Of a stretch of 64,000 bases of DNA, positions 3,101 to 62,860 are shown piece after piece (position 1 is the first letter of the stretch; each line of letters starts with the position of its first letter). The translations under genes were made by a program, and so were the position numbers. Where the stretch lies: positions 44,601,961-44,665,960 of the forward strand of contig NC_068991.1 in the NCBI RefSeq assembly GCF_001194135.2, given 5' to 3'. The notes under the pieces are model-generated. The model was not told the DNA's origin, did no database searches, and saw only the letters and a program-made list of their open reading frames with translations. The stretch is from Octopus bimaculoides (lineage: Eukaryota).

Positions 3101-3986
3101 ATTACATAAATGTTTTCTCTGACTCCTGGAGTTATATTTCCTCTTTATTTCTTACATTACAAACATAATTTATATGAATATCAGTCCTTTCTGATATTCC
3201 TTCATGATAATCTGGTATAGCAATGAAATTTTTGTGATTTATATTTTCACTGCTTAAGTGTGGACAATTTGCAAATGTGTGTGTTTGTGTGTGTATGTGT
3301 GTTAATAATTTTCTGAGTCATTAGGTCACTTCTAAAGAAAATGCCAAAATAACCTTATTTTCTCTCATAGATTACCAGGCTCTAAGACAAAAATGCATAA
3401 CAATGTCAATTTTCAAACAATTTGACAATCATTATTGAAATGATAGCTACCTCCCAGCAAGGCAAACTAAAGGATATTTAATAAAGACCAATATGGATGT
3501 TATTTATTTCAATCTTTCAATTAATGAAGCAAAACTAAAACATGGAAATTTGCTTGTTTTCCCACAAGATGGAATACAAAGAAGAAAAAAGCAAATAAAT
3601 CTAACAAAAAAAGAAAAAGAAGTGGAGAGGTATTTCTTTTCAGCCCAAACAATACAGCAATGTGTAAGGAGAGCTACATGTGGATAATAACACTGAATAG
3701 ATTGAACTAGCTAAATTGAGCCAGTAGTGGAAATAATAACAAGGCTATTTCTAATTAAATTCAGTAGAATAATATTTTTTGTTTAGTAAAGGAAGTTTTA
3801 GTCTAAATTTACCAGAGCACTAACTGGATCAATGAGGCAGATTATCAATAAACTGTGTTGGTGCAATTTTTTCTCTTTTACAGTAATATTTCTTTTTATC
3901 AGATACTCATAAATTAACTCATTTTCATATATAAAGAAAAGAAAATGGTGAACTGACTGAAATGTGAATAAATAAATTGACAAATG

Positions 3987-5901: not shown

Positions 5902-7570
5902 NNNNNNNNNNNNNNNNNNNNNNNNNNNNNNNNNNNNNNNNNNNNNNNNNNNNNNNNNNNNNNTGTGTATGTGTGTGTGTGTGTGTGTGTGCGTGTGTGT
6001 GTGCATGCATGTAAATAGAATAAAAGAATAGACAAGCAAGCTACAGGTACTGAATCAGATTATAACATATTTATACAAAATCTAGTGAAAAACAAATGCA
6101 TAAAGGAGTATAAAAATCAGGAAGTCAGTAAAAATTTGATTATGGGATGTTCTTAAAAGTTGCAATGTAATCAGGTAGAATTATAGGAAAAGGCAGAAGA
6201 TAAGTCCATAGTATTGATATGAGATATTTTGGCATGCAGATGAAGGTTATCACAAGGACAGTCTTGAAACTGAAAGAAAAATATGCTGTGCAGAATAATC
6301 CTTACAGCTGTTTCAACAATTGTTGTATAATTGGTGCAATTTTCTGCATCCAAATCTTTGTGGCAACCAATTCTATCTTTAGAAGGATAATGGGTAGAAA
6401 CTCACTAAAGAAATGAATATATAAAGGGAGAGGCAGATTTATAGAAGTGAGCATACATGAAGAGGGGCAGATTTATTAAGGTTAAAACTAGAGGAAGATA
6501 TGTAAGTAAGTGCCACCATTAAGTTTAAGTGTCAATATTTAACTCACCTTAACTTATTTATTTCTGCAAAAACACAAAAATCTATCTCACTAGCTAACTG
6601 CATAAATAAATAATAAAGAATAATAGTATACCATATAGTATTACTTGGACTCTCATTGATACTGGAATGCCATATCAGAGCAATAATGCTCATGCAATTT
6701 ATGCTTGAAAGGGTCTATGCAGATCTTAATGCATAACCTCATTACCTATCAAATTGTCAGAAAAGCTATTACCACTTGTGTTCAGATTCTTTGAAACTTT
6801 CCAATTTTATCATAGATCAAAGTGTCCTGCCATAAATATATTCACACAACTCATATCCACATAAATACTAGGCTCCTTCATTAACTAACTGCCACATATC
6901 TTCCTCCATTTCTCACATTAAACAATACTTGATTCTTATTTCTCTTACCTACATTTTGAAATCCTTATTGACCAAACCCCTCAAAGCAATAAATTATACC
7001 ATACACATTATCCTACTTTCCTTGATTTAATAAATTGCTGCATACTTCATATGAACTTTTTACCATTGGTCTAGACCTACCACACAGATAGCTCATCTGA
7101 ATTTATATATATATATATATATATATATGTCATCTTTTAGTATCCTACTCCACATCCCATTAACTTTAAGTTCTATATCACACTTCACCACCTCCTGACA
7201 GACTGGCCAAACTAATAACCCCTAATCCTCCCCACTTCACAGCTACACTTCTATGTCCCATCCTTCCCATATCATCTCCATGAGTACATCTAGCTCCTAT
7301 CTATATAATCACATAGCATTTCTTATTTACATATCTTCCTCTGGATTTAGACCTTAATAAATCTGCTCCTCCTCATTTATATTCATTTCTTCAACAAGCT
7401 TCAATCCACTAACCTTCCAAAGATGGAATAGGTTGCTATAAAATTAGGATGCAGGTAACATACAGAGAACTGTATCAATTATGCACCATTCTTGAAACAA
7501 CTGTGAAGGAAATCTGCACAACATTTTTCTTTCAGTTCCAAACTATGTCATATCAATACTATAGACTTAC

Positions 7571-8423: not shown

Positions 8424-8710
<287 letters not shown>

Positions 8711-9885: not shown

Positions 9886-10810
9886 TATTATTATTATCAA
9901 TAATAATATTATTAAGGAAAAGAAACATTCAGTTTAGAATAAGTGAAATTGTTCACTGCTTTCCAAAGAAGTTAATTTGAACTGATGGCCAAGGATTCAC
10001 AAATGAAATATAATTCATATCTGCACAAAACTTGGAAATAGTTCAAGACAAGTTTTAAGAATGACTTTTCACTTGTCATTTGATATCAAGAGTGTTAGAA
10101 GAGATTATTCAAATGATGGGGAGGAGGCTATAAAAAAGATAGCCAATAATAATAATAATTAATAAAACATTGTTATAGCTTTTAGTTTCTCTTTTTAATT
10201 CTTTCTTTCTTAAAATGAAGTCTATGAAATCTTCCTTAGACTCAAAATATAGTGGTGTACCTTTTCAATATATAGTCCATATCTTATAGCATAAATTTAA
10301 TGAATGTATCTCCCATAACAAAGTACCTTGTGTTAAGGAATAGCTTACAACTGTCTAAAAAGTTTATCACATTAAATAATAGAAAAATTCATATTTAACA
10401 ATAATTGTTATCATTATTATTATAATTTTATGAGCATTTTATTTTATTTTAATTTTTTTTCCTTGGTGGCATAATTACAATTGCTTTTATAAATTCACAT
10501 ATTTAGATATTGTTGAAATAATTACTTTTTATATCTAACCTCTTGCCTTTGAAGTTCATTAAAATTTAAAGTTGAAATTCTATTTCAGTATCTGCAAAGG
10601 ATTTTTCAGCTTGTTATGTAAATTAATCAAATCAGGTATTAGAGATAGATGTTTAAAAATATATTCTTTCTTTTTTTAAAATTTTATTTTATATTGCAAT
10701 TAAAAAAAAATAGCACTATCGATTATAGCTTTCCAGTGAGCTGCTCATTGGTTTACTGTATTTCTGACAATGAGAAATATGGAAGAACCTATAACTCAGT
10801 GGACTTCATT

Positions 10811-15225: not shown

Positions 15226-15826
15226 GATACATGTGTCATTATTAGAATCTTTTTAGGTTGTGTAAAGAGGGAAAGAACCCTCATCTGCAATTTTGATGAA
15301 ATTCGAATCATAGGTATTCCATTTCATTAGAGAAAATATAACAGAAAANNNNNNNNNNNNNNNNNNNNNNNNNNNNNNNNNNNNNNNNNNNNNNNNNNNN
15401 NNNNNNNNNNNNNNNNNNNNNNNNNNNNNNNNNNNNNNNNNNNNNNNNNNNNNNNNNNNNNNNNNNNNNNNNNNNNNNNNNNNNNNNNNNNNNNNNNNNN
15501 NNNNNNNNNNNNNNNNNNNNNNNNNNNNNNNNNNNNNNNNNNNNNNNNNNNNNNNNNNNNNNNNNNNNNNNNNNNNNNNNNNNNNNNNNNNNNNNNNNNN
15601 NNNNNNNNNNNNNNNNNNNNNNNNNNNNNNNNNNNNNNNNNNNNNNNNNNNNNNNNNNNNNNNNNNNNNNNNNNNNNNNNNNNNNNNNNNNNNNNNNNNN
15701 NNNNNNNNNNNNNNNNNNNNNNNNNNNNNNNNNNNNNNNNNNNNNNNNNNNNNNNNNNNNNNNNNNNNNNNNNNNNNNNNNNNNNNNNNNNNNNNNNNNN
15801 NNNNNNNNNNNNNNNNNNNNNNNNNN

Positions 15827-17367: not shown

Positions 17368-17865
17368 NNNNNNNNNNNNNNNNNNNNNNNNNNNNNNNNN
17401 NNNNNNNNNNNNNNNNNNNNNNNNNNNNNNNNNNNNNNNNNNNNNNNNNNNNNNNNNNNNNNNNNNNNNNNNNNNNNNNNNNNNNNNNNNNNNNNNNNNN
17501 NNNNNNNNNNNNNNNNNNNNNNNNNNNNNNNNNNNNNNNNNNNNNNNNNNNNNNNNNNNNNNNNNNNNNNNNNNNNNNNNNNNNNNNNNNNNNNNNNNNN
17601 NNNNNNNNNNNNNNNNNNNNNNNNNNNNNNNNNNNNNNNNNNNNNNNNNNNNNNNNNNNNNNNNNNNNNNNNNNNNNNNNNNNNNNNNNNNNNNNNNNNN
17701 NNNNNNNNNNNNNNNNNNNNNNNNNNNNNNNNNNNNNNNNNNNNNNNNNNNNNNNNNNNNNNNNNNNNNNNNNNNNNNNNNNNNNNNNNNNNNNNATATA
17801 TATATGTATAGACCTATATATATGTATATATCTATATCTATATATATATATATATATATATAATG

Positions 17866-26179: not shown

Positions 26180-26731
26180 TATATGCTTCAACACACAAAC
26201 TCACATAAAGAATCTTACAAACCAAATCCAAAAACGAAATTAAATCTTATAGCTTATAAATATTATCAAAGATAGTAATTAGTTAAACTTTTAGTCATCT
26301 AAAAAAAAGCATGCATGAATACTTGTGTGTNNNNNNNNNNATATATATATATATATACATATCAACTGTGGCTAAAAGTTTGAATACAAATTTGAAATTT
26401 AAAATTTTTCTAAATATATTTTGATATAAAGATAAAAACTAATTATCAACTGAATATTTTCAAATAACAAAGTTAATTAATTTATATTTCATATTATAAG
26501 AATGATGTCATATTTCATAATTTCAACATCTGGCTAACATTTCTGATACTATAAATTACTACCTAGAGTCATCTAGCAGTGGTCTGCCCATGTGCAGTTC
26601 CTGTGTATGTGAACACTCTCCCACACTCTCTGCCACTCCCCTGCCACTGTCAAGTAAATTATTGCAATTTCAGGTACAATGATTAGACTTGGGATGAATA
26701 CTGGAGTGGTTTCTTGTTGCCTTCTCTAGGC

Positions 26732-27980: not shown

Positions 27981-28627
27981 NNNNNNNNNNNNNNNNNNNN
28001 NNNNNNNNNNNNNNNNNNNNNNNNNNNNNNNNNNNNNNNNNNNNNNNNNNNNNNNNNNNNNNNNNNNNNNNNNNNNNNNNNNNNNNNNNNNNNNNNNNNN
28101 NNNNNNNNNNNNNNNNNNNNNNNNNNNNNNNNNNNNNNNNNNNNNNNNNNNNNNNNNNNNNNNNNNNNNNNNNNNNNNNNNNNNNNNNNNNNNNNNNNNN
28201 NNNNNNNNNNNNNNNNNNNNNNNNNNNNNNNNNNNNNNNNNNNNNNNNNNNNNNNNNNNNNNNNNNNNNNNNNNNNNNNNNNNNNNNNNNNNNNNNNNNN
28301 NNNNNNNNNNNNNNNNNNNNNNNNNNNNNNNNNNNNNNNNNNNNNNNNNNNNNNNNNNNNNNNNNNNNNNNNNNNNNNNNNNNNNNNNNNNNNNNNNNNN
28401 NNNNNNNNNNNNNNNNNNNNNNNNNNNNNNNNNNNNNNNNNNNNNNNNNNNNNNNNNNNNNNNNNNNNNNNNNNNNNNNNNNNNNNNNNNNNNNNNNNNN
28501 NNNNNNNNNNNNNNNNNNNNNNNNNNNNNNNNNNNNNNNNNNNNNNNNNNNNNNNNNNNNNNNNNNNNNNNNNNNNNNNNNNNNNNNNNNNNNNNNNNNN
28601 TTTTATATATATATATATATATATCTA

Positions 28628-28658
<31 letters not shown>

Positions 28659-31600
28659 TTATATATTAATATATATGTCTGCGTGTACATGTGCATGCGT
28701 GTGTATTCTGGAACAAAGATTATAGCATAATATTAAATTTCAGTAGGATGGATCCTTCATATTTGAAATTATTTTTCTGAATGACAATGAAAGTATTTAA
28801 AATGAACAGAAAATCAAGGGTTTAAATAAAACATATAAATTTTGAACAACTGTTACATGTTAGTGTAGAAATAGAAACCAAAATTAGAATGATGAAATTA
28901 AAACAAAAATATAAATATATGAACATACATATACAGACAAAAGGTAAGAAACACAACTAAATAATAAACATGATTGAAGTGAGCACTTACAGTCTCCTAC
29001 CCTCCCCTTCACTCATACACTAACCTTATTAGCAGAATAAGAATGTCAATATATGAAGTCTTATCTACATAATATTACAGTCCATGAAATGAGGCCAATA
29101 ATATAATAATCTCTCTAATTACATGTGTGCATGCACACACACACACACACACACAAACACATACATCAATAATATATATGTGTGAGTGTGAGTGTGTGCA
29201 TACATATGCACACATCTACATATATAACACACATACGCACACACATGCATATATATATATATANNNNNNNNNNNNNNNNNNNNNNNNNNNNNNNNNNNNN
29301 NNNNNNNNNNNNNNNNNNNNNNNNNNNNNNNNNNNNNNNNNNNNNNNNNNNNNNNNNNNNNNNNNNNNNNNNNNNNNNNNNNNNNNNNNNNNNNNNNNNN
29401 NNNNNNNNNNNNNNNNNNNNNNNNNNNNNNNNNNNNNNNNNNNNNNNNNNNNNNNNNNNNNNNNNNNNNNNNNNNNNNNNNNNNNNNNNNNNNNNNNNNN
29501 NNNNNNNNNNNNNNNNNNNNNNNNNNNNNNNNNNNNNNNNNNNNNNNNNNNNNNNNNNNNNNNNNNNNNNNNNNNNNNNNNNNNNNNATATATATATATA
29601 TATATATATATAAAGCCAAATGTTAGAGGAACTCCATATTTTCTAACATCAATGATTTTAGAAATAATTTCTGATCCATTTCAAATCAATAATGTTTTAC
29701 TTTGACCTTATTTCATTTCAACTATATCACATCAGGAAAATAATTACATTAGAATTAATATATTATTATTTTCATCTTCTTTACTGTGAAAACCCAGGTG
29801 ACACTGTTTAGAACTTATTCCAGTTGCAATAGATTTAGTTTGTTCATTTAACATAATCTTGTTACACACACAATCTTTTGACAAATTCCTACATAGAGCT
29901 ATTTTGTGACTATGTAAATTCAGAATTCAGCCACCAGATATTAAAGAAATTTCATTAAACTAACGATCAAATAAGTTTGGTGGATGACTATTTACTATTA
30001 AAGATCTGAGTGTAAAAAAAGAACATTTATTTATTGAAATTCTATTACTCCTCCATGAGTACACAAATTTAAATTGCTCAAAATATGTTACTTTACCAAA
30101 CTGCAGTTTCAAATAAATAAAATGCAATATAAAACAGACAACTAACTGCTTCTTAAAATGAAGAAGCTAGGTTTCACTTCTTTTAATAGAACAACGTTGT
30201 ATCTGTTTTTACAATTAGTTTCAAATTACTAATCATACCAGAGCTAAAGTTCATATGAACAGTAAGTTTTATACACTGCATGAATAGTACCTATAAAATG
30301 TCCAAAATAGAATAAAACAACACACATCCAATGACTTACACACTTATAGAGCCTTACTTAAAAATAATATATCCCTACTACCATACATACATGAATGTTG
30401 CTGACTTGATTCTAAACAACCTATTTAAGTGTTCATAAAGGGAACCTGTACAAAAAAAACTGCTTGACCAAAAAAAAAAAAAACTATTCCATTCTTTGAT
30501 GATAGTTATACTATGAGATTTACAGCATGTTGTCTATTGACCAGAATAACAGGAGAGAAGAAGATATATTCTTATAGACTAGCTACTGTCTCATACATAC
30601 AGACTATTCACTGCGCTAATTACATAAATACACACCCCAAATACATGCATGCATACCAATACATACATATACCCACCCATGCGTATTGTACATTGTCAAA
30701 TGGCATACTATGAAGATGGCTTTATGGAGTATACAACAATAAAATAAAGATGCCCGGAAACAGAAATATGCATAAATAATTCATATAATACTTCCTTCAG
30801 ATCAATGTTTATAGATCAGTATAATTTTCAAAATATTTCATTATGTCATTTTTCTTTTGTGGTTCAAGAAAGAAGCTCATATATTTATTTACAAATTAAT
30901 TTTGGAGTATTACTTGGTATTTTTTCAATTGAAATTTAATATAGTCAAAATTATCATTAATTTCTTAAAAAACATCCTTTTACTCAAATTGTGTATTATC
31001 AAAAGTATTTCACATAGTCCGATGTGATTAATGAAATTATAAAATATTTCAAGATAACTAATTTTAAATTGAGCTGTATGCACACATGATTCACCTTTTT
31101 GCTAAATCCTTCTGAAATTAGTCATATCGTTTTACCCGAAATATTAATTCCTTGTCAACTGAAAACTGAAAAACTTTTACTTGCTAAGACACAAATACCA
31201 AGAAAATATTAACCTTTTTGGGCAATGTTCTCATTTCTAACACCCTTTACATCTATGAATGAAAAGTTTCCAATATAAAATGGAGAAAGAAAAAAATTAA
31301 AACTTCAGATATTTTGATAAGAAACTTTTAATGAAATATAATAGCTAAAATTTATTTTATTTCAATATGATTCTTTACTTTGTCAAACAATATGTTTAGA
31401 TGATTAAGATTTTACTGTTATACAACAGAATCAGTTGCATGACTGTGAATTCAGACATTTATTAAAATAAATATCAGAATTCACAGTTGAAATACAATTG
31501 TCTGCCCTGTTCCTAATGCTAATCTTTCAACCTTTTCAGTGGCAAATGGTAGGCTTAATCTGTTACTGATGCTCCTTTAATGTCACCACCTGGTCCTTGC

Positions 31601-36347: not shown

Positions 36348-37057
36348 ATGGGCTGTGACTGCTGAGGACATGCGTAAGCTCACAAGGAATGAAGCCAGTA
36401 TGCTCCGTTGGATGTGTAATGTCAGTGTGCATACCCGTCAGAGTGTAAGTATCTTGAGAGAAAAGCTGAACATTAGAAGCATCAGTTGTGGTGTGCAAGA
36501 GAGACGATTGCGCTGGTATGGACATGTGGTGAGAATGGATGAGGATAGCTGCGTGAAAAAGTGCCACACCCTAACAGTTGAGGGAACCCGTGGAAGAGGT
36601 AGGCCCAGGAAGACCTGGGCTGAGGTGGTGAGGCAAGACCTTCGAACATTGGGCCTCACCGAGGCAATGACTACTGACCGAAACCTTTGGANNNNNNNNN
36701 NACCATTCTGAGCGTGACCGTTGCCAGTACCGCCTGACTGGCCTTCATAGGATTTTCGAGCGAGATCGTTGCCAGTGCCCCTGGACTGGCTCTTGTGCGG
36801 GTGGCACATAAAAGACACCATTTTGAGTGTGGCCGTTGCCAGTACTGCCTGACTGGCCCTCGTGCGGGTGACACGTAAAAGCACCCACTACACTCTCTGA
36901 GTGGTTGGCGTTAGGAAGGGCATCCAGCTGTAGAAACTCTGCCAAATTAGATTGGAGCCTGGTGTTGCCATCCGGTTTCACCAGTCCTCAGTCAAATCGT
37001 CCAACCCATGCTAGCATGGAAAGCGGACGTTAAACGACGACGATGATGATGATGATG
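36348..37057 (+). mobile_element. 5'-truncated RTE LINE (last ~110 codons, 3' UTR, (GAT)n tail) inserted in a (TA)n tract
   Basis: WAVTAEDMRKL...RRLRWYGHVVRM...GTRGRGRPRKTW (ORF 36355-36711), same family as 43830-47347. Both sides are TA-rich. Confidence 0.92.
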
Positions 37058-43829: not shown

Positions 43830-46800
43830 GATGGCACTCTAAATGTATGCACATTGAAAGGTAGGTCTAGCGAGATTGTAGAGATGCTTGAATGGAGACG
43901 TGTTGATGTATGTTGCGTACAAGAGATAAGATGAGGAGGAGCTTCAGCCAGAGTCCTCACAGGCAAAGTACATAGGTATAAACTCTTGAGGGTAGGTAAT
44001 AGTGATGGAATAGGGGATGTGGGCATACTTCTTGCAGAGAAATGGGTGGATAAGGTCATAGAGGTAGTGAGGGTGTGCGATAGAGTACTTAAACTCAGGC
44101 TAGTCTTGCAGAATAGTATAGCTACAATTATCTCTGCCTACGCCCCACAAGCAGGCCTACCAAATGAACAGAAGGATCACTTTTATGATATTCTTCTGCA
44201 GGCTACTTCAAAGATGAGTCACAATGATCTCATCTTTAAGGCTGGAGATTTCAATGGGCATGTTGGACAGCAATCTGGTATCTTCCAAGGTGTACATGGG
44301 GGCCATGGAGTTGGTACCAGAAATGAAGAGGGAACTAGGCTCCTGGAGTTCTGCAATGCAAATAAGCTATTGATCTGCAACACCAACTTCAGGAAGCCAG
44401 CTAGCCACCTGATAACCTATCAATCTGGTGACTCTGCTAGCCAGATCGATTTCATTCTCACCAGATAGTGGGATGCATGGTTGCTCTTAAATACAAAGAC
44501 CCTCCCTGGTGAAGAATGCACCCCCACAACATAGACTAGTTATTAGTGACTTTAGACTTGAGGCCAGAAGGATGCCAAAAAGCAGACCAATCTGGAAAAG
44601 GACTTGTAAGCTTAGGAACCCTACACATGGTCAGAGATTTAGGGATACCCTTACTGAGAAATTTGATGATAGGGAGGAGGAGCTACAGTCTTGTGACATA
44701 GAAGGCAGCTGGGAATTCTTTGCGAGACAGCTTGCTGAGTGCCACAGACCAAATCTGTGGCTGGTGCAATGTCCCTTCCAGACCCAGGGTAACATGGTGG
44801 TAGAACAATACCGTAGACAGGGCCATTAGATGAAAGAAACAAGTTTGGAATGCCTGGAAGAGTGGGGGTAGCAGGAAAATGTATCAGGTAGCCAAAAGAG
44901 AAGCTAAGAGACAGGTATATATAGCCAAGGGAGTAGCAGAAAGGAAGAAGTTTGCCTATGTTCAGCGATGTGAGGACCAAAGACCTGAAGTATTTCAGAT
45001 TGCAAGATAGTGTGTGAGAGAAAACCATGATGCCATAGGAGAGATGGATGATGGTGTCCTTACGTTTAATGATTCTGCAAAGAAAGAGGTTTGGAGATGC
45101 CATTATGAAAGACTGCTGAATGGGAGAATGAATGGGAGGAGGAGAGTCTGCCAAAGGTTGACCCAATTGAGGAACCAGCTATCCAAATCAACAGTACCCA
45201 GGTAGATAAAGCAATTAAGGATATGAAGACAGGGAAAGCACCTGGCCCATCAGGAATCACTGCTGGGATGCTTAAAATATCAGGCGGTGTGGGTTATGTT
45301 CCTGTGCCCCGCATCATAACTCAGGTAGTTAATGAAGGAGTCATACCCAATGACTGGTGTAGCAGCACCATAGTCAACTGCTACAAGGGGAAAGGTGATG
45401 TTTTAGACAGAAATAACTACAGGGGTATCAAATTATTGGACCAGGTTATGAAAGTTACAGAAAGAGTCATAGCCCAACTAATTAGGGAGAGAGTTAGCCT
45501 AGATGAGATGCAGTTTGGTTTTGTGCCAGGCAGAAGCACCACTGATGCTANNNNNNNNNNGCCTAGATGAGATGCAGTTTGGTTTTGTGCCAGGCAGAAG
45601 CACCACTGATGCTATATTTCTGGTAAGGCAGCTGCAGGAGAAATACCTAGCCAAAGACAAACCCCTGTACTTGGCTTTTGTTGAATTGTAGAAAGCCTTT
45701 GACAGGGTCCCCCGATCCCTTATCTGGTGGTCAATGCGGAAACTAGGGATAGACGAGTGGCTGGTAAGAGCTGTACAAGCCCTGTACAGGGATGCTGTCA
45801 GTAAGGTGAGGGTTGGCAATGAGTATAGTGAAGAATTCCGAGCAGAAGTAGGAGTTCACCAAGGATCAGTCCTCAACCCCTTCTTATTCATCATAGTCCT
45901 CCAGGAATCCAAGACAGGTTACCACTGGGAGCTCATCTATGCTGATGACCTTGCTCTAAGAGCTGAGTCACTGCCAGAACTGGAGATGAAGTTTAGGGTG
46001 TGGAAGCAAGGTCTAGAATCAAAGGGCATTAGGGCTAACCTAGCAAAAACCAAAGTGTTAGTAAGTAAGAAGGCTGTCAAATCACAACCTGCTTCAGACA
46101 GATGGCCCTGCTCAATCTGTAGAAAAGGCGTGGGTAGAAACTCCATACAATGTACATGGTGTAAGCTATGGACACATGAAAAGTGCAGCAATATCAAAGG
46201 AAGGTTAATTAGGAAAATAATTTTTGTGTGTGGCAGATGCACTGGGGCAATAAACACTGAAGACATACAGAAAATGGATTTCATCACATGCCACGGGGAG
46301 AAACTAGAAGTAGTTAATAGCTTCCACTACCTAGGTGACCAAGTCTGTAGTGGGGGTGGCTGCTCTGAGAGTGTAGCGACTAGAGTAAGAATAGCCTGGG
46401 AAAAGTTCAGGGAGCTCCTACCTCTTCTGGCAACTAAGTACCTCTCGCTCAGGGTGAAAGGTAGACTGTATGATGCATGTATGCGAACTGCCATGCTACA
46501 TGGCAGTGAAACATGGGCCATGAATCCTGAGGACATGCATAGGCTTGAAAGAAATGAAGCTAGTATGATTCGCTGGATGTGTAATGTCAGTGTGCATACA
46601 TGACTGAGTGTAAGTGCCCCGAGAGAAAAGTTGGGTATAAGAAGCATCAAATGTGGTGTGTAAGAGAGGCATCTATGCAAGTATAGTCATGTGTTTACAT
46701 ATGAATGCAGACAGCTGTGCGAGGAAGTGCCACTCCCTAACTGTGGAAGGAACCTGTGGAAGAGGTAGACCCAGGAAGACATGGGATAAGGTGGTGAAGC

Positions 46801-51385: not shown

Positions 51386-52829
51386 TCTAAAACAGAAAAG
51401 GGAAATTTCCTCATGACTAAGAGGAGTGGGGCTAGATTTAAGAAAGAAATATTAGTGTTTGACACCCCTATGGTAACTTGGATTAATATTAAAGAATGTA
51501 CTTCTGCTCATCTAAAAAAAGGTGTAGATGTCTCCAATTTGGCATTTAGATACACTCCAGTCTGCTTCTTTTGCTGCTATTACTGTAAAACTGTATTTCT
51601 TAAACAGTTTCCATTTGATATTGTAGTCTACAACCTTCTTCAACTGCTGTATATGCTTGGCCAGTGTAGTGATTTATGCATGTTGTAACTCTGGTTTTGA
51701 GTTCTACCTCATATACAATGGTGTCTTTGTTACAGAGACTATTGAGCAAACTAGTGATGATATTCCCACAAGAATAACTAATTTAAGAACTAGGATGGGC
51801 TTATGCAAAAGGATACTTCTCATGTTAGCTTTGGATTGGAAAAACTTTACATGTGTGTCTATTGAATAGCTTTCTGCACTTGTGTATGTGAGGAAAATAT
51901 TTATCAACTAACTTAAGGAAGGCTTACCTATGGTAGGTTTAATATTTAGAGAGAAAGTGAGTGTAAAGCAAAAAACTTCGTGGTACTGTTGTCTTTTAGG
52001 TGAGTTTAGGCTGAATGTGTAAGTGATCTCCTTCAGTTTATATATATATATTGTTCATGCATCATTATGCATAGCTGGATGGTTTTGTATTTGAATTGCC
52101 AGAATAGTTTCTTGTTTTACTGTTAGATATTATTTCCAGTATCAAAATCTAAAAATGTAAAGCTGGCTATATTCAGTTCATCAATTGGCATGGTTTTAAA
52201 ACATCAACTCTTGGATCAATAATTCAGCTCAAATCTGGAGCTTAACTCAATTTCCAAAATGTCAAGTGTTGGGAGTAACATTTCCTCTTAGATAAATAGC
52301 TAGTCTAATTCTGCTTTCTTACCCAAAGATAGGGTTCAGCACCAACAATTAAAAATTGCAAGTAATCAACTGTAGCATTACATTCAATTAGTTCAATGCA
52401 CTAAAACTGTCAAACCTGTCAATTTTGTTAACCTGATATTTATTTGAATATAAAGGGTGAGACACAAAGCTAAGCTCAGTGGAATTTGAACTATAGAAAG
52501 TTAGATTCCAAACAAGTCAGCAAATACTGACAGTAATTTTTTATCCTTCAAAAAAACAAAAAAAAAAGAAGACAAAAAACCTAAAAGCTTTTTTCTGTGC
52601 TAGAAGAAATCAAATTAATGCATACACACAAAAAAAAAAAAATAATAAATAAATAAAAGAAACAAGAAGGCAATTTTGCTTCTACTGAAAATAGATTTTG
52701 CTTTAAAAAATATTTATTTGATATCTTATAATATCACTGCCTATTGTAGCATAAATGAATTATTTAAATCTAAAATAGAAAAGAAAAAAGTATCTTTTTA
52801 AGTGTGAAAACATTTAAAAAATGACTTAC

Positions 52830-56552: not shown

Positions 56553-56636
56553 TCCGCTGTGGGTAGAGGATTATCCTTCATTGTCATGAATACACAGTTG
56601 CAAACGATGGTCAAGATGACCACAAGGCTGAAAAGT
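56553..56636 (-). CDS. Nav1: Nav exon 3 (DI-S1: LFSLVVILTIVCNCVFMTMKDNPLPTAE), 84 nt
   Basis: Follows the AC acceptor, S1 motif TIxxNCVFMT, donor GA|GTAAGT, phase 2. Confidence 0.95.
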
Positions 56637-57818
56637 GTATGGATGCTAAGGAAGTCAATAACAAAGAATCTTACATAAAATTAAATCAAAATTAATAATA
56701 AATAACAACCAGAACAACTTCAACATTAACCCCAGTACTATTATCAGTATATTCATTCTGCCTTTCATAACCTTCTACTATAACTGATCAACTAAGTGCC
56801 ATTTATATATTGAGATTGCCTTGAATTTATCCCATCTGTCAAACAAATTAGTTTATTTCCTGCTAAAAGAAATAATGATAATCCATGCACCAATCAACAA
56901 ATGTACAGACATGCAAAATTCTAATGTTTGCTCATTCCTTTCAATTTAAATTGCTATAGACTCATCATAACTTGATCACTCCAGACTTACTCAGCAACAT
57001 ATTACATCAGTAAGTAGTATATACTGATTACATATGGAGATTGAGAAAGTTTTGAACAATCAAGCTATGACTAGAGTTGAACAAAATTAATTCTGTACTT
57101 GTATACATTTGAAGATCCTTCGAAATTTTACAGACTTCTACAATCATTGCTTCTATTTTTACTACAATGCCAAATTATAGCACTGACAAGAGAACTTATT
57201 TCTAGAGTGGAAAGGGAATCTCTTTGTCCTGAATAAAAAAACTCTTGAAAAAAGTTTTCAGTCATAGCTCTCTGAGCTTATCTTTACTCTGATTATGATT
57301 TAACTTTTCATATTCATTCATTTATCATTTGTCCATACAACCATATAATATTCATTTTCTCTCCAAAGCAATATCCTTTTCATAAACATTTTATTCTGCT
57401 ATAAACATTTAAATTTTCCAATTTCACAATCCTTTCAAACTTTTACTGGCTATAACACTAACAAGACAATAACTTAGTTTTAGAATAGATAGTGAATCTC
57501 TATGTCCTGAACAAAATCTCTTGAAATAAATTTTCAGTTTAATTGCTGAAATCATTAGATTTTAAGTTAACTAACTGATACACCATTTCTTTTTCACACA
57601 TGTTACTTGTTTCTGGGCAATAAGGTAATTATCTAAACAATCACTTTTCATTGAATCAAACTGTAGATAATACTATGTTTCCTGCCCAATAGCTGCACTA
57701 CCTTAACTGTTCATCTTCTGTGATACATGGAACTAAATTTTAATCACCAAAATAAATCATACAAAAAAAAGATTATATACAAAAGTGCAAGAAATCAAAG
57801 TCATTTTGAAAAGGATAT
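56637..57818 (-). other. U12-type (minor spliceosome) AT-AC intron, 1182 nt
   Basis: 5' end ATATCCTTTT at 57818, branch-like TTCCTTAGC at 56653-56645, 3' end CATAC at 56637. Removing it joins CC+A into Pro and keeps the frame. Confidence 0.93.
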
Positions 57819-57937
57819 GGATGGACCAATATACAAATAGCAAGTCGTCTTAATGGGTTAAATGGACTCAACAGAAAAATGGCTTTCGTTGCGGAAAATC
57901 TGAAGATTGTTTTATCTCTTGCTATTACACAAAAGCA
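57819..57937 (-). CDS. Nav1: Nav exon 2 ([40 protein letters not shown]), 119 nt
   Basis: Acceptor tttctttatgttacag, in frame with exon 1, motifs IFRFSAT and PFNPLR. Ends at the U12 donor ATATCCTTTT. Absent from the ORF track. Confidence 0.96.
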
Positions 57938-62492: not shown

Positions 62493-62774
62493 CTTCATAT
62501 TATGATAGTACTCATCAAGATCTTCCAGTGGCCGACCCTGAAACTTTCCAGGCACCTCCCCAATAGAAGGGGGAAGGCCTTTACCAGCTTCAAACTTAGG
62601 ATTCGGCTTCAGTTCCATTACATTTTCTTCTTCATCAGAATCTGCGTCCTCTGCTTGAGCACGCCTCTCGGCAATCCGGCGTTCGATGTCAAACAAGGTT
62701 TCCCTTGTGAACAGCCGGAAATACCCGGAACTACGAGTATCTGCTTCAGCTTCCACATCTCTGTCCGTTTCCAT
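62493..62774 (-). CDS. Nav1: Voltage-gated sodium channel alpha subunit, coding exon 1 (N-terminus METDRDVEAE...FRLFTRETLFDIERRIAE...PNPKFEAGKGLP...PLEDLDEYYHNMK, 94 aa)
   Basis: ATG at 62774 in GCCATGG context. Family motifs FRxFTRESL, PNPxLEAGKxLP and PLEDLDxYY are present. Donor AAG|GTTTGT at 62492, phase 0. An upstream acceptor (ttttttgctttcttttcag) starts the exon at 62860. Confidence 0.96.
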
Positions 62775-62860
62775 GGCTTTTATCACTACTCTCCTTCTTA
62801 GCTAGCACCAACCACACTGATTCTAAAAAATGATCCAGTGTAGCATCCTTTGAGGAAATA
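62775..62860 (-). promoter_or_regulatory. Spliced 5' UTR part of the first coding exon, containing a 7-codon uORF (62846-62823, MLHWIIF*)
   Basis: Strong acceptor at 62862-62861 implies an upstream non-coding exon. ATG...TAG read directly from the sequence. Confidence 0.7.

Follow-up and report, generated by a model that had tools for sequence, protein, structure and literature searches.

A predicted U12-type AT-AC intron with a variant branch site in domain I of a Nav1-type sodium channel gene of Octopus bimaculoides

The minor intron in segment S1 of domain I (D1S1) is a textbook case of deep intron conservation in four-domain channels. Intron 2 of the vertebrate SCN4A and SCN5A genes is a U12-type AT-AC intron (Wu & Krainer 1999, as cited in PMC2831892), and according to published work almost every Nav and Cav gene, a snail's among them, has kept the D1S1 U12 intron (PMC6259924). 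Among invertebrates it has been described in Nav1/Nav2 and Cav1-3 of Lymnaea, Nematostella, Polyorchis and Trichoplax (Fux et al. 2018, PMC6259924 Figs 5-6), a paper that in turn cites Spafford et al. 1999. A cephalopod case of the D1S1 U12 intron is not mentioned in Fux et al. 2018 (PMC6259924), where 'squid' appears only in physiological contexts.

We analysed a stretch of 64,000 nt from Octopus bimaculoides, referred to as a whole as the window, whose minus strand carries the first part of a voltage-gated sodium channel gene, from the N-terminus through domain I into the I-II linker (Table 1). The 427-aa spliced product matched Pfam Ion_trans with an E value of 3e-61 and contained the filter Asp of domain I (TQDYWE). 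Its best matches were para and vertebrate Nav1 proteins (58-70% identity), with Nav2/60E more distant at 53%; mollusc, insect and annelid sequences all fell at 64-71%. Three homology searches and a cluster look-up gave no sequence with a cephalopod name, and the closest match was a Logan contig, 84% identical over exon 1. A high AT content, the great length of the introns and the presence of intron 2, which molluscs also keep, would fit a cephalopod source. On the basis of its Ion_trans match and its greater closeness to para/Nav1 than to Nav2, the host gene is provisionally classified as a Nav1-type (para/SCN-like) channel gene. All introns seen in the window other than intron 2 had ordinary GT-AG ends. 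Nine runs of N, 1952 bases in total, and many (TG)n microsatellites are present in the window; since the draft assembly is rich in gaps, it may lack some linker exons in the interval from 33.7 kb to 9.5 kb. Two transposon-like regions were also observed. A GC-rich block inside intron 5 (GC 0.43-0.46 compared with about 0.31 elsewhere) runs antisense to the channel gene, and we take its ORFs by eye to be those of a non-LTR retrotransposon, with an endonuclease-like N-terminus and a reverse-transcriptase-like ORF containing YADDLAL. Broken ORFs in intron 1 presumably derive from a mariner-type transposase, which they resemble in the motif HPPYSPYLSPTDYHFF; in Pfam the N-terminal ORF matched HTH_24 weakly, and the C-terminal ORF had no match.

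Table 1. Positions of the features described in the window (position 1 is its first letter; a caret marks a splice junction).
Feature	Position	Strand	Description	Basis
Exon 1	62775..62493	-	ATG start (METDRDVEAEADT...); ends ...YYHNMK^gtttgt; phase 0	tblastn with Nav N-termini
Broken ORFs, mariner-like	about 59830-58840	-	in intron 1; motif HPPYSPYLSPTDYHFF	
Exon 2	57937..57819	-	119 nt; acceptor ttacag upstream; ends ...GTC CAT CC (CC of Pro codon)	
Intron 2	57818..56637	-	1182 nt; predicted U12-type, AT-AC subtype; phase 2; D1S1	homology and orthologous introns
5' splice site of intron 2	57818..57809	-	ATATCCTTTT	read from sequence
Complement of 5' splice site	57371..57382	-	UGAAAAGGAUAU in pre-mRNA; perfect 12-nt complement of AUAUCCUUUUCA; 404 nt downstream	
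Direct repeat, two copies	57193-57262, 57471-57538		about 70 nt each; in intron 2	
Branch-point sequence	56653..56645	-	TTCCTTAGC; 8/9 vs TTCCTTRAY; position 8 is G, consensus A	
Putative branch adenosine	56647	-	sole A of TTCCTTAGC; 10 nt upstream of last intron base	
3' terminal AC	56638..56637	-	context TAC^A; intron end ...CATAC	
Exon 3	56636..56553	-	84 nt; third base of Pro codon, LFSLVVILTIVCNCVFMTMKDNPLPTA, GA of Glu codon; then gtaagt	
Cryptic in-frame CAG	56630..56628	-	9 nt inside exon 3; from Phe-Ser codons TTC AGC	
Exons 4-9 (IS2 to IS6)	about 52959-52831, 47697-47604, 43625-43420, 41120-41058, 36126-35982, 33897-33733	-		motif scans and tblastn with homologues
GC-rich block	about 43980-46600	+	in intron 5; retrotransposon-like	
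I-II linker exon	about 9496-9283	-		motif scans and tblastn
N runs	5902-5963, 8555-8564, 15349-15826, 17368-17795, 26331-26340, 27981-28600, 29264-29587, 36692-36701, 45551-45560			

The 5' splice site of intron 2, ATATCCTTT (57818..57810), matches the U12 consensus RTATCCTTT (PMC8848931, PMC6259924) at all nine positions, and its position +5 is C, not G. The terminal dinucleotides are AT (57818-57817) and AC (56638-56637), and the full 3' end reads ...TTGACTTCCTTAGCATCCATAC. Between the branch adenosine and the end of the intron lies GCATCCATAC, which contains no pyrimidine tract. The terminal AC is the first YAC after the branch site and stands at the usual distance from it; the spacing of 10 nt is slightly under the optimum of 11-13 nt reported for human introns (PMC3584512). 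We consider it highly probable (about 0.9) that intron 2 is a U12-dependent AT-AC intron of a Nav1-type gene, orthologous to the D1S1 minor intron, because the signals are located exactly at the homology boundaries, the spliced peptide is gapless and the same position and phase are found in six other loci. Its removal in Octopus bimaculoides would accordingly be expected to depend on the minor spliceosome, which presupposes that the genome encodes the U11, U12, U4atac and U6atac snRNAs. A preliminary description of this DNA had proposed a minor-spliceosome AT-AC intron at the ancestral Nav position, and both the signals and the orthologous loci agree with it; the coordinates that it gave for the donor (57818), the branch sequence (56653..56645, with A 56647) and the terminal AC (56638..56637) proved exact base for base. 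An Rfam scan of the 64-kb window returned no matches, hence no minor snRNA gene lies within it. Among molluscs, Lottia has a reported U6atac (PMC2396436).

For the comparison with other animals, homologous genomic loci were fetched and the junction was located in each, which gave six comparator introns and, with that of the window, seven. The donor CATCC^ATATCCTTTT was found in the annelid Ridgeia, with branch sequence TTCCTTGAC, and in the sea slug Plakobranchus, where copies A and B share it and have the branch sequences TTTCTTAAC and TTCCTTAAC, respectively. The clam Tegillarca (branch ATCCTTAAC) and the land snail Candidula (branch TTCCTTAAC) both have CATCC^ATATCCTTTA. All five of these introns end in AC. 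The SCN3A-like gene of the skate Rhinoraja has CATTC^ATATCCTTCC, branch sequence TTCCTTAAC and a 3' end that is apparently AA. The six comparators thus have the ATATCCTT donor and TT(C/T)CTT(A/G)AC 9-13 nt before the end, the protostome ones ending in AC. Position and phase are common to the window and all six: the intron follows codon position 2 of the residue after His in ...ILVH(P/S)^(L/I/V)FS. On this shared placement and these signals, intron 2 is identified as orthologous to the minor intron that Nav and Cav genes ancestrally have in D1S1.

With the vertebrate SCN D1S1 intron, the octopus intron shares the codon position (after His-Ser/Pro, phase 2), the ATATCCTT donor and a short branch-to-3' distance; it differs in being 1182 nt long in an AT-rich genome with long introns. 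The presence of an AT-AC intron at the matching position of vertebrate SCN genes, also claimed in the preliminary description, is published, and the skate locus agrees in position. The skate intron itself has TTAAC in its branch site where the window has TTAGC, and apparently AA at its end where the window has AC. The introns of Fux et al. 2018 have in common with the window the homologous junction and the consensus elements (ATATCCTTT, TTCCTTRAC, YAC). The octopus intron resembles those of the mollusc and annelid loci, but it alone among the introns compared has G at position 8 of the branch site.

The intron is absent from the two arthropod para genes and the bdelloid rotifer Nav gene compared, whose proteins are orthologous (58-70% identity over S2-S6). 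In the spider Caerostris, the bee Frieseomelitta and the rotifer Rotaria, ...ILVHP(V/L)FS... is encoded on a single exon. Since exons 2 and 3 are contiguous there, the D1S1 intron was precisely lost in these three animals. The loss in the two arthropods agrees with the statement that a single calcium-channel gene of fruit flies retains a U12 intron (PMC2831892). A different arrangement was observed in the Nav gene of Plakobranchus ocellatus, which contains two copies of exon 3, at about 3592-3666 (IFSILVMLTILVNC...) and 9950-10015 (LFSVTVMITIITNC...) of the fetched locus. A separate U12 branch motif and AC stand before each copy, and a single ATATCCTTTT donor lies upstream. These copies may be mutually exclusive exons that use one minor-intron donor. 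A duplicated or alternative exon 3 was sought in the window and none was found; only (TG)n microsatellite noise matched.

The branch consensus UUCCUUAAC pairs with the GUAAGGAA segment of the U12 snRNA. The preliminary description had pointed to a variant branch site with its sole A 10 nt before the end of the intron, and this was confirmed, with a match of 8/9 to TTCCTTRAY. The G at position 8 (56646) is unique to the window among the seven introns, since the six comparators read TT[A/G]AC. One explanation is that the true sequence is TTCCTTAAC and that the G arose in sequencing or assembly or represents a rare allele. The draft nature of the assembly, with its nine N runs in 64 kb, and the A at position 8 of all six comparators speak for an error; there is, however, no sign of low quality at 56646 in the window, and the G variant still permits full pairing with U12 by a G-U wobble and so need not be deleterious. 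We regard such an error or a rare allele as unlikely and treat the G as part of the octopus intron.

The effect of the G was estimated by the anti-branch alignment and hydrogen-bond scoring described in PMC8848931. The variant scored 18, compared with 19 for the consensus with A at R (TTCCTTAAC) and 18 for the consensus with G at R (TTCCTTGAC). In the mouse, a shortage of minor snRNPs is reported to increase retention of those minor introns that deviate from the consensus, and scores below 17 are counted as suboptimal (PMC8848931). RNAduplex energies for U12 with the branch variants were set aside as uninformative because the geometry of the bulged A is not modelled, and hydrogen-bond counting was used in their place. 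The spacing after the branch motif is that of the clam Tegillarca. Because the G-U wobble keeps the U12 pairing, the score of 18 equals that of one consensus form and the spacing is clam-like, the variant is probably mild rather than crippling. Either A of the branch consensus can be used as the branch point in different introns (PMC3584512). From the known pairing between U12 and the branch site, A56647 would be the bulged nucleotide in the octopus intron.

As read from the genomic sequence, exon 3 starts with A CTT TTC AGC, and splicing 57819>56636 yields ...ILVHP^LFSLVVILTIVCNCVFMTM..., with His-Pro-Leu-Phe-Ser (CAT CC^A CTT TTC AGC) at the junction and ^LFSLVVILTIVCNCVFMTMKDNPLPTAE following it. 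The spliced 68-aa peptide of exons 2 and 3 aligned without gaps across the junction with human Nav1.1, Nav1.7, Nav1.5 and others (E about 1e-18; domain I S1), the human counterpart segment being ILVHPLFSLVVILTIVCNCVFMTM. With the same 68-aa query, the first protein search returned no candidates; longer spliced queries did match. An exact look-up of the exon-1 read-through ORF gave no matching record, and no transcript from Octopus bimaculoides was found. A transcript-like Logan contig of 1230 nt from a 63%-identical relative contains exons 1-5 contiguously and reads CAT CCA TTA TTT AGC at the junction. This contig is RNA-level support for the junction in a relative, not in Octopus bimaculoides.

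Enumeration of AT, GT and GC donors with AG and AC acceptors near the exon ends gave 61 in-frame combinations. The preliminary claim that the frame closes only with the AT-AC sites therefore does not hold as to 'only'; it stands in the sense that, among the 61 pairs, AT(57818)-AC(56637) alone fits the U12 consensus, leaves the length unchanged and keeps the conserved H-P-L-F-S. One of the other pairs joins the same donor to the CAG inside exon 3. If the U12 donor were joined at least partly to this site (AT-AG), an in-frame isoform without Leu-Phe-Ser at the start of S1 would be made. The CAG lies 19 nt from A56647, a distance within the range usable by U12 introns. U12 3' splice-site choice has moreover been described as error-prone (PMC3584512). 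Against this, all Nav homologues compared have LFS (or I/V-F-S), introns with mixed AT-AG termini are reported to be disfavoured (PMC3584512) and no YAC precedes the AC, which stands at the usual distance. An equivalent TTY-AG is present in every comparator, and the Phe-Ser codons (TTY AGY) explain why all species have an AG shortly after the start of exon 3. Use of the CAG is thus very unlikely, and AC(56637) is retained as the 3' end of intron 2.

An AT-AC intron could also be removed by the major (U2-dependent) spliceosome, as is the second AT-AC intron of vertebrate SCN4A/SCN5A. U2-type AT-AC introns do exist in sodium channel genes, but all of those have G at +5 (PMC2831892), whereas the window has C at +5 within a perfect ATATCCTTT. 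The U12-type branch motif 10 nt from the 3' end, the lack of a pyrimidine tract before the AC and the full U12 signals in all orthologous introns also speak against U2-dependent removal, which we consider highly improbable.

Counted over the window, neither motif is enriched: ATATCCTT occurs 4 times (3.65 expected) and TTCCTTRRC 3 times (1.97 expected). What is non-random is their placement, since the donor falls on the first intron base set by homology and the branch motif lies at the right distance before homology resumes; under a composition model, the joint probability of both motifs at these fixed places is about 2e-10. That the true boundaries are GT-AG and the U12-like motifs a coincidence, as the chance frequency of either motif alone might suggest, is hardly credible, because only three in-frame GT-AG pairs exist, all of them using the poor donor GTTGAGTCC at 57872 and deleting 7-21 conserved residues, because the joint placement is so improbable and because the intron position is conserved across phyla. 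We also looked for a second U12 intron in the window and rejected the candidates, as the minus-strand RTATCCTT sites at 51816, 45224 and 3477 and TTCCTTAAC at 10340 do not adjoin coding sequence; the donor-like site at 45224 (match 45217-45224) falls inside the antisense retrotransposon-like block.

According to the mechanism that we propose for the U12-dependent intron, the U11/U12 di-snRNP would recognise both the 5' splice site AUAUCCUUU, a perfect match, and the branch sequence UUCCUUAGC. In the latter, UUCCUU would pair with AAGGAA of the U12 snRNA, G8 would form a G-U wobble and C9 would pair with G. With UUCCUUAGC in such a full helix, A56647 (A7) alone of its bases would be an adenosine free to bulge, and it would attack the 5' splice site. 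In the second step the first YAC, 10 nt downstream of the branch A, would be used, and the product would join CAT CC to A CTT TTC AGC. Knock-down of the minor spliceosome lowers Nav1.5 and Cav1.2 output in rat cardiomyocytes (PMC8767276), and by analogy with other systems (PMC8767276, PMC3584512) slow U12 splicing could modulate the output of the octopus channel.

Within intron 2, the 12-nt complement of the 5' splice site widens to 22 nt at 82% (57371-57392 with 57797-57818), and about 6e-4 such matches are expected by chance. The resulting splice-site helix appeared in both the minimum-energy and the centroid fold of the first 490 nt of the intron; the region as a whole folded no better than shuffled sequence (z +0.77). 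The helix was sought in the annelid and mollusc introns and was absent there, and the skate has a complement of only 8-9 nt. The predicted helix might cover the site that U11 binds, or it may have arisen by chance. A tunable brake on sodium channel production, made up of two features peculiar to this species, the single-A branch at the short end of the distance range and the 12-bp helix over the whole U11-binding 5' splice site, is conceivable and in our judgement quite improbable; if true, splicing of this intron would respond unusually strongly to the supply of minor snRNPs or to remodelling of RNA structure. Intron 2 also contains a direct repeat, the two copies of which are 83-88% identical and spaced about 277 nt apart, as would result from duplication within the intron or from a short repetitive element.

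The prediction in the preliminary description that gene finders restricted to GT-AG would drop or mangle exons 2-3 was borne out by the models of other species. In a sample of about 198 retrieved Nav models covering D1S1, which is rich in fragments and hence biased, only 92 had the canonical junction. Read-through of the donor was seen in 29 (H-S/P-Y-P-F..., the literal translation of CAT TCA TAT CCT TT), and the 77 other models that failed the canonical test mostly lacked exon 2 or were scrambled, a few being mere sequence variants. Many vertebrate SCN models (P0010, P0014, P0019, P0129, P0275, P0300-P0306 and others) showed either the H-S-Y-P-F read-through of the ATATCC donor or the absence of exon 2. 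The Nav gene of Tegillarca is annotated as two genes with the break exactly at the D1S1 intron, and that of Plakobranchus is annotated as split, its second model starting in or adjoining the second copy of exon 3. The models of Candidula, Pinctada (P0189) and Leuciscus are corrupted at the junction. The CAG inside exon 3 is the acceptor that AG-seeking predictors tend to choose, and a recurring cause of bad models.

The biology of the D1S1 minor intron is not new, and the Octopus intron is a further instance of a documented and deeply conserved intron. It adds one data point to the pattern of retention and loss in protostomes, in which molluscs and an annelid keep the intron and two arthropods and a rotifer have lost it, and it places on record the rare TTAGC branch variant. 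The main practical value of the finding lies in annotation, as a model of this gene limited to GT-AG introns would leave the N-terminus and S1 of the channel truncated, split or corrupted.
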